Source of the DNA: Macrostomum lignano
Taxonomy: Eukaryota
DNA length: 64,000 nt
NCBI GenBank assembly: GCA_002269645.1
Contig: NIVC01000438.1
Span: 535,379 to 599,378 of the forward strand
Direction of reading: 5' to 3'
Shown here: in pieces, positions 29,202 through 34,502 of the stretch
Layout: each line of letters starts with the position of its first letter
Position numbering within the stretch: position 1 is the stretch's first letter
Made by a program: the position numbers and the translations under genes
The notes under the pieces: generated by a model
The model's database searches: none
Told to the model about the DNA's origin: nothing
Seen by the model: only the letters and a program-made list of their open reading frames with translations

Positions 29202-32200
29202 TTAGAATTCCGAGAACTCCTTGGCGCATTTCTCGCTGCTGGCGATCCGCAGCGGCTCCTCCTCGTATTCGTCGAAGTTCGACGCGTCGCCGGGCCCCTT
29301 CGACTTCGGGATGAAAGGCGCTTCCAGCTCCTTTTTGTACACCTGAAATTATTGCGGCGGTCATTGCCGTATGGAGCTTTAGCTTCACTCTGATTGGCTA
29401 ATACGTCAAAAATTAACGTTGTTGTGATTCGCTACAGTAATCAAGAATTATCTAGGCTCTGACTGGCGACAGAATTAAAGAACTATCTAGGCTCTGATTG
29501 GCTGCAGAAATAAGAAACTATCTAGGCTCTGATTGGCTACAGAATTAAGGAACTATCTAGGCTCTGATTGGCTACAGAATTAAGGAACTATCTAGGCTCT
29601 GATTGGCTGCAGAAATAAACTATCTCGAGACTCTGATTAGCTGCAGAATTAAGGAACTATCCAGGCTCTAATTGGCTGCAGAAATAAAAAACTATCTTAT
29701 AGGCTCTGATTGGCTACAGAATTAAGGAACTATCTAGGCTCTAATTGGCTGCAGAATTAAGAGACTATCTAGGCTCTCATGATTGGCTAACAGAATTAAG
29801 GAACTATCTAGGCTCTAATTGGCTGCAGAATTAAGAAACGATCTAGGCTCTAATTGGCTACAGAACTAAGGAACTAGCTAGGCTCTGATTGGCTACAGAA
29901 TTAAGGAACTAGCTAGGCTCTGATTGGCTACAGAATTAAGGAACTAGCTAGGCTCTAATTGGCTTCAGAATTAAGAAACTATCTAGGCTCTGATTGGCTA
30001 CAGAATTAAGGAACTAGCTAGGCTCTGATTGGCTACAGAATTAAGGAACTAGCTAGGCTCTGATTGGCTACAGTAATCAGGAACTACGTGTATCTGGACT
30101 CTTTTATCTACGAGTAATTGCCAAGGACAAATACCTGAATCCAATCGGTGGCACCAAACCACTTGTGCGATTTGATATCGTTGACGCCGTTCTTCAAATT
30201 GCCAAACCGCTTGGTGAGGTCCACCTGCAGAAGGTTCCTCAGCAGGTCCTTCAGATCTGACGAGAAGTGACTGGGAAAGCGCACCTTGCCCGAGACGATC
30301 TTCTCGTAGATCTGGATTGGCTGGTCGGCGAAGAAGGGCGGATAACCCGCGGCCATCTCGTACACAAGAACGCCCAGGGCCCACCAGTCCACGGCCTTGT
30401 TGTAGCCCTAATTGGAATTGGAAATAATCGTCATTAAATCATAAAATAATTATATATATCACTTAGAACCATAGTTTAATATTTAACCTATTTCGCGATC
30501 ACTTTTACCGCTCAATAAAAATTGTTGATTTTAGCGCCACTAGTAAATATTTGAATAATTGGCAGGATTGACAACTACTTGTTTAATTACCGTCACTGAT
30601 AATTGTTTAGGTAAATTAATACCGCCCATGATAACTATTTAGTTAAATACTGCCACTGATAACTATTTAGTTAATTACTGCCACTGATAACTATTTAGTT
30701 AATTACCGTCAATGATAACTATTTAGTTAATTATCACAATAGCACCACTATTATAATTGCCCCCACTGCTAAATTTTTCTCATTATCATTGCTCACCTTG
30801 CTCAGAATGATTTCAGGCGCCAGATACTCAGGCGTGCCGCAAAGAGTCCACGTGCGACCTTTCACGCGTTTGGCAAAACCAAAATCCGTCACCTAAATCA
30901 TAAACGAAGTTAACGGACCAATTATAAATTTCAGTAATAATAGTTTTGAATAAAGTAAAAAGATAATAATTCACAAGCAACGGTAAGCGCGAGCAATACT
31001 TAGTTCTTTTCAAACAAAAAATCATATTTTCAATGGTTTTATTGAACAGACACCCAGTTTTAAAAACAATCAATGCTAATATTCATTGTGCAAGCATGAA
31101 GTACAGTATATCTATAGTATAAAGTGCAATCTTCAACACTCCGAATGTATGTGCTTTTCTTACGAAAACAACCGAATAGAATCTTGTTTCTAGTAGTTTT
31201 AAATAATGGCTACAAAAGATAAGGGCTAGGGAGTTATAAAATACAGCATTCAGAGGCACTTCAGTTGTGCTTAGCATTTTATACAAAAACTTTTTTGCCC
31301 TTCTTTTGTTAAAATCATGGAATATACAACTTCCAACTTACATGTAGATTGAAATTGTTCGGATATTTCGATTTTTTCCTAATAACGATTTCTTTAGTTT
31401 CTAGATTATCAGCCGCTTATCGCCAAATCGCTAAAAATGTTTTCTACGAGCGTACAGAGTTGACTTAGTGTAGAATTCAGCCCTCTGAAGTTTTATCAAA
31501 CCCTCAAAGCCCAACTGAATTTCTATTGGCTGTGCGAGATTCTATCAACCCCATCGTACTCGGGGTGACTTACCAGTCCTATTTAGCCCCTACGAACCCA
31601 AAGCGGGATTTCGATTGGCTGGGCGTTGGGTGGCTGACCAAATTTTTCTAACCCCATGTCCACCCACTCAAAATTGTAAACGCCAAGCTAAACTCTCATT
31701 GGCTAGGCGTGGGCTGGACCTAATTTTTCTACCCCCTTTCCCCGCCCAACCGCTCTTAAACTAAAAGCCCAGCTGAATTCCTATTGGCTGGGCGACTTTA
31801 CAATCCTCGGTTCCATGCAGACCTAGATACGAGTACATTTAGCTACTAGCAGTAGTAGAAACCGGTCGCTAAGTTTTATTCTCACTTCTTGGACAGATAT
31901 TTACACGACGTTAAATACAATCTACACTAAAACCTTAAATCCGTCAACAATTACATGTGCAGCAACATGTAGTATCGCACCAACACAACAACGAACAACG
32001 AATACTTACATGTACTTCAGTTCACTGTACAAACGATTGTAGTACGAGCGTAGTTAAAATTTTAGAAAATCTTACTTTGATGTAGCCAACACTGTCAATT
32101 AGCAGGTTCTCTGGCTTCAAGTCGCGATAGATGAGGTCGAGACTATGCAAGTACTCAAAACCGAGCACGATTTGGGCTGCATAGAATCTCGAGTGAGGCT

Positions 32201-34502
32201 CGCTATAATTATTGAATTAGGAAAAAATATAGTAAAATCGATATTGACTAAAAAGACATATTGAAAATCATAGCGTCAGAATCGGCATACAGCTAGATTA
32301 GCAGTTTTCTAATTTGCAATTATAGTTTTTAAAAAAATAACTTTTCTGCAATTCGTCTTACTGAATGCGCAAAAGCAGTGAAAATTACGCAATAAGAATT
32401 CGAATAAAAAAAGAAAAAAGTTTCTAATTCCAGATTATGAAAAATTCCCTTACAAATATTTGCAAGTGATCAAAAGCTCAGTAAAAAAGAATTTATAGGA
32501 GTAAAACTAATTTGAAACCTTTAGAAATCCTTGAGAATCAATTAGGATATTCTCAGGCTTCAGATCCCTATAGACCAGGTCCAGATGGTGCAGGTACTCA
32601 AACGAGAGCACCACCTGAGCCGCGTAGATACGGGATGTGTCCTCGCTGGAACAATTACATATTTAGCGAAACAAATTGTCACTTAAATGTTTTTGCTGTT
32701 GCTTAATTTGATAAATCACCTAAGAATCTGCATATAGTAATTGGGGATTTTACCCTGCGCTTTCTACTTGTCAGTCTTCTCTAATCACCTGTAATTAGAT
32801 CTTATCACCTGGAATTAGATTTTCTTACCACCTGTAATTAGATCTTTTCTTACCACCTGTAATTAGATCTCCTTACCACCTGTAATTAGATCTTCTTACC
32901 ACCTGTAATTAGATTTTCTACCACCTATGCAATTAGGAGTTCTACACCTCATTAGGTCTCTTTTCCTCATGAAAAATCACAGCTGTAATTCTGCAATAAA
33001 AAACATACAGTAAAACTTGAAAAAAATCCAAACTATAGCGCTCAAATTATTGCCTACAAAAAATCGGGCACAGAAAAAGCAACTAAGCAATCTCAAAAGC
33101 TGCAATGGTTGATTAAAACAACTATAAAACTGGCGGGTGTACTGGCGGGCAGCGATATAGATTTCATGCCTACATTTCTTTCACACTGTAGGAATCTACG
33201 ATAGCCACTAGAATTTCTAGGAGTCTCTTTAACTGATAAGATATTATTTTTTGCGCAAAGTTTCAAAATTATTTATAACTGAGTTCTGACCATATAATTG
33301 TAGTAGTTACATGTATTTAGCTCCGCAATCGAGCTTCTTACTCGCAATGTAGTTTAACCATTTAAAACTGTGTCTTAACTACATCACAAGGACACTCACT
33401 ATAATTCGTGGTAAAGCAATTAAAGCTAATTTTCATATAATGCTAAACCATATCGCTTACCTAAATCGGCCGATACGTCGCAGGTGTGAAAACATTTCTC
33501 CACCATTCACAAATTCGAGTACCATGTACAGATTGCTGTTGTCCTGTTCGTTGGGGAGTTTTAGAAGTCATTCATACAATGAACACTGGCTTGGAATGGG
33601 GTGTGCACATTGGGGTAAGAGAGACTGGCTTGGGGTGGGTGTGTGTACATTGGGGTAAGAAAGACTGGCTTGGGGTGTGTGTGTACATTGGAGTAAGAGA
33701 GACTGGCTTGGGATGGGGTGTGTACATTACATTGGAGTAAGAAAGACTGGCTTGGGGTGCGTGTGTGAACATTGGAGTAAGAAAGACTGGCTTGGGGTGT
33801 GTGTGTGTGTACATTGGGGTAAGAGAGACTGGCTTGGGGTGGGGTGTGTACATTGGGGTAAGAGAGACTGGCTTGGGGTGGGGTGTGTACATTGGGGTAA
33901 GAGAGACTGGCTTGGGTGTGTGTGTGTGTGTGTACATTGGGGTAAGAGAGACTGGCTTGGGGTGTGTGTGTGTGTACATTGGGGTAAGAGAGACTGGCTT
34001 GGGGTGGGGTGTGTGTACATTGGAGTAAGAGAGACTGGCTTGTGTGAGGTGTGTACCTTGGGTAAAGAACGTTGCGCATGAAGTAGCGCATCTCTATATA
34101 AAGTATTTCATTTACTTTCACTTTAAATAAGAGTTTCGCACCTTGAAATTGTAGTCAAGTCGTACAAGGAACGGAAAGTTGATAGCCTGAAGAATTCGTT
34201 TCTCATTGAGAGTGTGCTCAACCTGCTTCAGCTTTACAACCTGCGAGAATATTTTGACAAGTTAAGTGAGTTAATATTCAACTACATGATTAATTAATTA
34301 ATACTACTCACCTTCTGCTTGTCCAGTATCTTCATAGCGTAGAAGTTCTTGGACTGTTTGTGCTGCACCAGCATCACCCGACCGAAGCTGCCGGTGCCGA
34401 GGGTTCGAACTCGGTCAAAATCGTCCAGATGAGCCGTGTTCTGGGCCGGCCGGTCCCATTTGTCCTGGAAGTCTTTCTTGGCGTCTTCCAGAAACGATTT
34501 AA
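29202..34502 (-). CDS. PRKACA: cAMP-dependent protein kinase catalytic subunit (common exons)
   Basis: Exons 34502-34312 ([11 protein letters not shown]...[12 protein letters not shown]...[10 protein letters not shown]), 34240-34142, 33543-33461, [32645-32519 or 32202-32076], 30892-30797 ([25 protein letters not shown]), 30407-30135, 29342-29202 (...KEFSEF*). All GT-AG and phase-consistent, and nearly identical to metazoan PKA-C. The symbol denotes the PKA-C orthogroup. Confidence 0.97.
29445..30085 (+). repeat. ~35-bp minisatellite (TCTAGGCTCTGATTGGCTACAGAATTAAGGAACTA) filling the last PKA-C intron
   Basis: About 18 tandem copies; units carry CTGATTGGCT or CTAATTGGCT. Confidence 0.95.
30560..30740 (+). 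repeat. Degenerate ~28-bp tandem repeat (TTAATTACCGTCACTGATAACTATTTAG-like)
   Basis: About 6 visible copies. Confidence 0.75.
31500..31800. repeat. Degenerate ~85-bp tandem repeat, each unit with ATTGGCT plus a GGGCG-like box
   Basis: ATTGG at 31525, 31614, 31698 and 31783. Confidence 0.6.
32076..32202 (-). CDS. PKA-C alternative cassette exon B (127 nt)
   Basis: atag|C GAG CCT...ATC AAA|gtaaga encodes (S)[42 protein letters not shown]. Confidence 0.95.
32519..32645 (-). CDS. PKA-C alternative cassette exon A (127 nt)
   Basis: ccag|C GAG GAC...CTA AAG|gtttca encodes (S)[42 protein letters not shown]. Confidence 0.93.
32785..32925 (+). repeat. ~24-bp tandem repeat (CACCTGTAATTAGATCTTCTTAC-like) upstream of PKA-C cassette exon A
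   Basis: About 6 copies. Confidence 0.8.
33580..34060 (+). repeat. ~39-bp minisatellite (ACATTGGGGTAAGAGAGACTGGCTTGGGGTG..GTGT) in a PKA-C intron
   Basis: About 12 copies with a variable (GT)n part. Confidence 0.93.

Follow-up and report, generated by a model that had tools for sequence, protein, structure and literature searches.

A tandem pair of catalytic-core exons, probably mutually exclusive, in a protein kinase A gene of Macrostomum lignano

Can a single gene for protein kinase A's catalytic subunit (PKA-C) give rise to two kinases that differ within the catalytic core? The question is raised by a 64,000-nucleotide stretch of the genome of the flatworm Macrostomum lignano (GenBank assembly GCA_002269645.1, contig NIVC01000438.1, positions 535,379 to 599,378 of the forward strand), which we term the window and whose coordinates are used throughout. 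A complete PKA-C gene lies on its minus strand at 34842..29202, and in it one 127-nt exon of the catalytic core is present twice in tandem, as an upstream cassette A and a downstream cassette B. A first-pass annotation of this DNA had proposed that the reading frame makes the two copies mutually exclusive, that both are functional, and that they descend from an ancient spiralian cassette. Our analysis makes it highly probable that this is a functional, mutually exclusive exon pair, duplicated before the gene split into three lineages in M. lignano, and that both copies have been maintained since. The wider ancestry is another matter.

The gene was located by tblastn with a mammalian C-alpha sequence, used as a probe only, and the matches were refined by splice-site inspection and translation of the open reading frames (ORFs). 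The product is ~83% identical to the solved C-alpha structures and aligns over its full length with PDB C-alpha chains at E ~1e-198. It has the full kinase core, the activation loop and the C-terminal FxxF tail of a PKA catalytic subunit (PRKACA/B-type AGC kinase), and all the kinase motifs are present in the translated A and B isoforms alike. The gene is composed of the following elements, where a slash marks an exon boundary.

34788..34842, minus strand: annotated first coding exon, ATG at 34842, encoding MITIIRKLGNSRKDCPDD and the first base of a Val codon; donor G/GTGAGT
34312..34502, minus strand: 191-nt exon with the A-helix, Gly-rich loop and beta3, from tblastn, splice sites and ORF
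34142..34240, minus strand: 99-nt exon with the alphaC region, from tblastn, splice sites and ORF
33461..33543, minus strand: 83-nt exon ending ...GRF + AG; upstream donor common to both cassettes
32519..32645, minus strand: cassette exon A, of derived type, with 127 nt for C-alpha residues 140-181; acceptor ttccag/, donor AAG/gtttc
32203..32518, minus strand: intron between the cassettes, measured as 316 nt
32076..32202, minus strand: cassette exon B, of canonical type, with 127 nt for residues 140-181; acceptor attatag/, donor AAA/gtaag
30797..30892, minus strand: 96-nt exon with the DFG motif and activation loop; downstream acceptor common to both cassettes
30135..30407, minus strand: 273-nt exon, alphaF to alphaI, from tblastn, splice sites and ORF
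29202..29342, minus strand: last coding exon, C-tail ...FSEF, TAA stop at 29204..29202

The two cassettes, 316 nt apart, lie exactly where the first-pass annotation had placed them. Both have AG directly before them and GT directly after, are entered in phase 2 and left in phase 0, and have one open frame only. By alignment to the solved structures both span C-alpha residues 140-181, comprising helix alphaE, the catalytic loop Y164-N171 and beta7-beta8. When the two segments are extracted they differ at 11 of 42 residues, as first counted, and share the other 31; at the nucleotide level they are identical at 81 of 127 positions, with differences distributed 15/7/24 over the three codon positions, most of them at the third. 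The catalytic residues are kept in both, and exon B is indeed nearer to mammalian C-alpha (86.7% by tblastn, against 67.4% for exon A).

Since a length of 127 nt is not divisible by 3, double inclusion or skipping shifts the frame. The preceding exon 5 ends ..TTT AG at 33461, and the first C of a cassette completes AGC (Ser). Translation of the four possible combinations shows the consequence. With A alone or B alone there is a full ORF ending ...EFSEF at the stop codon. With A and B together a stop is met 15 codons into B, and with neither the product ends at once as ...GRFR. Thus the frame enforcement that had been proposed is borne out, and the four junctions put forward with it (33461>32645, 33461>32202, 32519>30892 and 32076>30892) agree with the coordinates of our gene model. 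The locus has these marks of mutually exclusive exons: adjacent homologous exons of equal length and phase, intact splice sites, and a product incompatible with inclusion of both or neither. Equal length, phases and AG/GT boundaries also hold in two paralogous lineages.

Is the pair a recent, local event? There are three PKA-C gene lineages in M. lignano (window/L001, L004/L005 and L002), of which the window is the sister copy of contig NIVC01000862.1 with 94-97% nucleotide identity. All three have an A-type followed by a B-type cassette in tandem, each of 127 nt with AG/GT boundaries and open frames. The A cassettes of the other two lineages read EDVSRLY..QIVLAF..HHLDLV..ENILINADGFLK (A2) and EPVTRLY..QVTLAF..HSLDLI..ENILIAGDGFLK (A3). 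Among the B cassettes (B1, B2 and B3) pairwise differences number just 1-3, window B being 2-3 amino acids away from B2 and B3. In neighbour-joining trees with 1000 bootstraps the cassettes never group by species, and a clade uniting A with B, whether of one gene or of the species, appears in 0-0.2% of replicates. The ratio of nonsynonymous to synonymous divergence (dN/dS) between A and B is mostly not computable, with dS saturated in five of the nine pairs and 1.5-2.0 in the other four. Given the grouping by type, the presence of the pair in all lineages and the saturated synonymous sites between A and B, the duplication predates the three-way split of the gene and both copies have been kept since. 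It is thus no recent local duplication, in agreement with the first-pass annotation.

Both types have evolved under purifying selection. By the method of Nei and Gojobori, dN/dS is 0.09-0.19 within the A type, and 0.02-0.03 within the B type with dS saturated among the B cassettes. A ratio near 1, which the first-pass annotation had taken as the mark of a dead duplicate, is not what is observed; the values lie well below 1 in both types, with frames and splice sites intact, and both copies are maintained by selection.

Six positions separate every A cassette from every B cassette: His142 is replaced by Thr or Val, Phe145 by Ile or Leu, Gly153 by Ser or Ala, Leu172 by Ile, Tyr179 by Phe and Ile180 by Leu. 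The first two are striking in a wider comparison of 45 other cassettes, in which the named sequences include molluscs, flatworms, annelids, a nemertean, arthropods, a nematode, a hemichordate and chordates. In this set 44 cassettes have His142 and 44 have Phe145, the exceptions being two transcript-derived proteins (Asp at 142 in P0066, Ile at 145 in P0020). Leu172 flanks Leu173, the adenine-contacting residue of the catalytic spine. Our literature search on His142 found nothing about its function. It is plausible that the A and B forms would differ in kinetics or in binding of the regulatory subunit; the first-pass annotation had suggested a tuning of affinity for substrate or R subunit. A profile built on the three A-type segments and their flanks returned short fragments only, and no A-type sequence from outside M. 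lignano.

Which of the cassettes is used? The A isoform is identical at 100% over its full length to the M. lignano GenBank proteins P0003 (BOX15_Mlig002500g1) and P0122 (Mlig001428). The deposited models each carry one cassette: A in Mlig002500/001428 and in Mlig032677, B in Mlig033349/001504. The last of these is annotated with the B exon, although 355 nt upstream of that B there is an intact A exon. Thus both cassette types are used somewhere in the PKA-C family of M. lignano, and in RNA from whole animals A is the main cassette of this gene and of one paralog, and B that of the third paralog. The doubt raised in the first-pass annotation, that exon A could be a dead duplicate, falls away, since A is the cassette of a model derived from RNA-seq.

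We may now set out how the system would work. The 127-nt exon, carrying alphaE, the catalytic loop YRDLKPEN and beta7-beta8, was duplicated in tandem ahead of the three-lineage split, and each transcript must hold exactly one copy. Transcripts with both or neither would be non-productive, and presumably cleared by nonsense-mediated decay (NMD). Copy B, downstream, has stayed with the sequence canonical for bilaterians. Copy A, upstream, evolves faster, still under constraint and with all catalytic residues kept, altering the N-terminus of alphaE (His142 and Phe145), residue 153, Leu172 and the two residues of beta8. In this way the gene could yield two kinases with the same tails and lobes and a different insert in the catalytic core.

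How general is such a cassette? Alternative splicing of this PKA-C exon is established and widely annotated in Mollusca. We have compared mollusc isoforms as annotated in RefSeq and UniProt, and bivalves as gene models. In Haliotis, Patella, Biomphalaria, Pomacea, Babylonia and Bradybaena, isoforms of the same gene are identical outside the cassette (0 differences) and differ at 8-15 positions within it. The Haliotis RefSeq isoforms use three cassette types (P0254, P0255 and P0256), and the Lottia gigantea locus L007 (KB202050.1) has three tandem 127-nt cassettes, at 14353-14484, 14815-14946 and 15368-15499. Three bivalve gene models have two cassettes in tandem. Thus M. lignano shares with the molluscs, which carry two or three cassette types, the same exon of 42 residues and 127 nt in tandem copies. 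It is unlike the vertebrates, where the diversity of PRKACA and PRKACB stems from gene duplication and alternative 5′ exons, with no alternative catalytic-core exon (PMC3625193).

The first-pass annotation had drawn its parallel with Aplysia, which belongs to a different phylum from Macrostomum and which we compare through the other molluscs. The parallel with molluscs is real, in that same-gene isoforms in the six gastropod genera above differ only in the 42-residue cassette. The Aplysia cassette is said to be this same ~42-residue alphaE/catalytic-loop segment. For Aplysia californica itself the confirmation extends to the title of Beushausen et al. 1988 (Neuron 1:853), the A1 and A2 forms of PKA-C being reportedly two subunits from one gene by way of an alternative internal cassette, an arrangement like that proposed for the M. 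lignano gene.

Further variation was noted in the same family. Other gastropod isoforms (Biomphalaria P0271, P0353, P0354 and P0356 compared with P0097, and Pomacea P0331 and P0278 compared with P0335) have 13-15 further differences outside the cassette, probably representing alternative exons just upstream of the Gly-rich loop. Outside the cassette, two transcript-derived proteins, P0040 and P0041 (transcripts L009 and L010; runs ERR1740137 and ERR1740134, from which P0041 comes), share 97.6% identity, and inside it they differ at 6 of 42 positions, the P0040 cassette being A-like (QVVL..ENILID..GFLK); alternative cassettes may thus occur in a third lineage. The P0041 contig was rejected as genomic evidence, being an intron-less transcript. 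In the gene model of Branchiostoma lanceolatum PRKACA (P0011, 400 aa) the activation-loop peptide occurs twice in tandem, which suggests a duplicated and possibly alternative next exon in amphioxus (the equivalent of human exon 7), or a mis-annotation.

Do the flatworm and mollusc pairs have a common origin? The same exon is duplicated in both, and residues 140-181 are those alternatively spliced in molluscs. If the cassette were spiralian or older, and orthologous to the exons of Aplysia and other molluscs, it must have been lost wherever one copy remains. Some features would fit. The Lottia extra cassette has ENILID and a Haliotis cassette has ENILID..GF.K, so that Ile172 is held in common with Macrostomum A, as is Phe179 in Haliotis. 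The Lottia extra cassette is also an upstream copy, as A is in Macrostomum, and with only 42 residues per sequence a deep orthology could be invisible. Yet Ile172 is also common in taxa with a single cassette, such as Owenia and the neodermatans, and the A-specific changes at His142 and Phe145 are found in no mollusc cassette. The types do not group across the phyla. The divergent mollusc type ('VLEYLHHLDIMY'; ..VLVLEYLHHLDIMY..) forms a clade at 78% bootstrap, and Macrostomum A falls inside that clade in 0-0.9% of replicates and with the third mollusc type (Haliotis_x/Lottia_c1) in 18%, at the low resolution that 42 residues afford. The changes themselves fall at different places. The divergent mollusc type is altered at 153-154, 159, 162-163 and 174 (VLEYLHHLDIMY..LLVD), and Macrostomum A at the six positions listed above. 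In the bivalve models the canonical copy comes first and the divergent copy second, the reverse of Macrostomum. Nor is the duplicated state found in the intervening spiralian lineages sampled: the loci of Echinococcus (a cestode) and Helobdella (a leech) have one cassette each, and no relic of another in the flanking introns. An attempt to recognize the single neodermatan cassette as an orthologue of A gave no discrimination, Echinococcus being 10-14 positions away from the A exons and 12-13 from the B exons. The ancient spiralian cassette of the first-pass annotation is thus unsupported, and we regard it as unlikely.

As judged from these comparisons, independent duplication would be the simpler reading, there being nothing positive for deep orthology. 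On balance we lean towards the view that the exon was duplicated independently in flatworms and in molluscs, that A is a lineage-specific variant of the core in which His142 and Phe145 have been replaced, and that the default cassettes of the paralogs have since diverged (two A, one B), the exon serving as a recurrent 'tuning knob' of PKA.

Three observations weigh against a functional, mutually exclusive pair in the window gene. Exon B of this gene is in no transcript or protein found in the collections searched. A search for what might govern the choice of cassette gave neither a conserved intronic regulatory element nor convincing RNA pairing: blastn between paralog introns gave at best E=0.004, in AT-rich sequence and with no conserved block, and the window gene has short inverted repeats only, no better than chance. 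Lastly, comparison with the sister copy is underpowered. There are 0/127 substitutions in exon A, 0/127 in exon B and 45/2295 in the introns, which is weakly consistent with constraint on the exons, given that ~2.5 substitutions are expected per exon and the p value of zero is ~0.08 for each.

Could exon B of this gene then be a relic, conserved in appearance and unused, with the gene making A only and the paralogs dividing the two forms between them? The single cassette of each deposited model, together with the lack of a B isoform of this gene, would accord with that. However, the deposited annotation was made from RNA-seq with StringTie/TACO and --isoform-frac 0.75 (PMC5730564), retaining only isoforms at least 0.75 of the major one. 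Minor isoforms are thereby dropped by design, so that not finding a B isoform for this gene is uninformative. Moreover, all six of the six cassettes in the three lineages keep their 127 nt, AG/GT boundaries and open frame, and the unannotated ones (B1, B2 and A3) are as constrained as those annotated: B1, B2 and B3 are separated by 1-3 amino acids with saturated dS, and A3 has dN/dS of 0.09-0.19 against A1 and A2. Over such a distance a relic would have decayed, and we consider this explanation quite improbable. Chance can be dismissed as the source of the pair, since the two cassettes hit identical C-alpha residues, with E of 1e-16 to 1e-20, and the PKA-C gene around them is otherwise complete.

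Returning to the mutually exclusive pair, what would enforce the choice? The sole mechanism of exclusion visible in the sequence is the reading frame. Mutually exclusive exons enforced by reading frame and NMD are a general class, and the M. lignano pair resembles it in being homologous, tandem and of equal length and phase, with a length indivisible by 3 and a premature stop otherwise. For the other mechanisms of exclusion there is no support. Steric exclusion is ruled out by the intervening introns of 316-1602 nt in the M. lignano genes, long enough for splicing, and all sites are GT-AG. No conserved docking/selector pairing was found in the paralog introns; a whole-intron duplex signal (z=-3.2 against mononucleotide shuffles) was rejected as weak and not reproduced in a paralog. 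There is a consistent difference in the splice signals across the paralogs. In the A exons the acceptor is ttccag and the donor departs from consensus (gtttc, gtaat or gtttat); in the B exons the acceptor is poorer (atag, acag or ctag) and the donor is the consensus gtaag. Such type-specific signals would fit a regulated competition between the two exons.

The 191-nt exon corresponds to human exons 2 and 3 fused (62 + 129 nt). The 99, 83, 127 and 96 nt of the following exons are the lengths of human PRKACA exons 4-7, the duplicated unit being the equivalent of human exon 6. Compared with the human sizes, exons 8 and 9 are also fused, and the last intron is moved 15 nt upstream (273 instead of 288 nt). 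Conservation of PKA-C exon structure extends across many metazoans (PMC3625193).

The 5′ end is less certain. The first exon at 34788..34842 agrees with the N-terminus of P0122 (Mlig001428), but trans-splicing is frequent among M. lignano mRNAs (PMC5730564), so that the 5′ end given here is provisional and alternative first exons may exist. The annotated N-termini do not have the canonical Met-Gly myristoylation start, and read MITIIRKLGNS.., MNIIRKLGNT.., MNLFKNKFSN.. and MEDFFKNFLEE.. (window 34788-34842; P0008, P0121 and P0125). The proteins P0008 and P0125, which come from sister loci, are set apart by their N-termini alone. Within the window, no MGN-type exon turned up upstream of the gene. 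The differing N-termini hint at alternative first exons, trans-splicing, or both.

Four of the introns contain minisatellite arrays: 39 nt x12 (33585-34062), 23 nt x6 (32780-32940), ~85 nt x4 (31503-31795) and 35 nt x19 (29425-30086). Long tandem arrays are dense in the window as a whole, at 9259-10454, 23092-23956, 24730-25522, 38698-39333, 41904-44248, 44553-45336, 49660-50839 and 58048-58699, among them 203 copies of a 12-nt unit at 41.9-44.2 kb and 159 of TATC at 38.7-39.3 kb, and these arrays account for the extreme GC and AT skews in its composition profile. The adjoining called gene encodes a 669-aa bZIP-domain protein (L001 15213-18820, ~window 23.3-26.9 kb, plus strand).

PKA-C is among the most conserved and best-understood of kinases, and its isoform diversity is usually credited to N-terminal exons or gene duplicates. 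An alternative cassette of this exon has been known in molluscs since 1988; here a second phylum has one, in a pair that is old within the Macrostomum lineage. The pair has been retained through a three-fold expansion of the gene, the A version alters two nearly invariant residues of alphaE, and the paralogs differ in their default cassette. Current M. lignano annotations, with one isoform per gene, under-report this diversity of PKA, which is relevant to the design of RNA interference or knock-out experiments on the exon. M. lignano is tractable to transgenesis (PMC5730564), and isoform-specific function is therefore testable in vivo. The upkeep of alternative catalytic-core exons in a second phylum points to residues 140-181 as a place where the enzyme has been tuned repeatedly.

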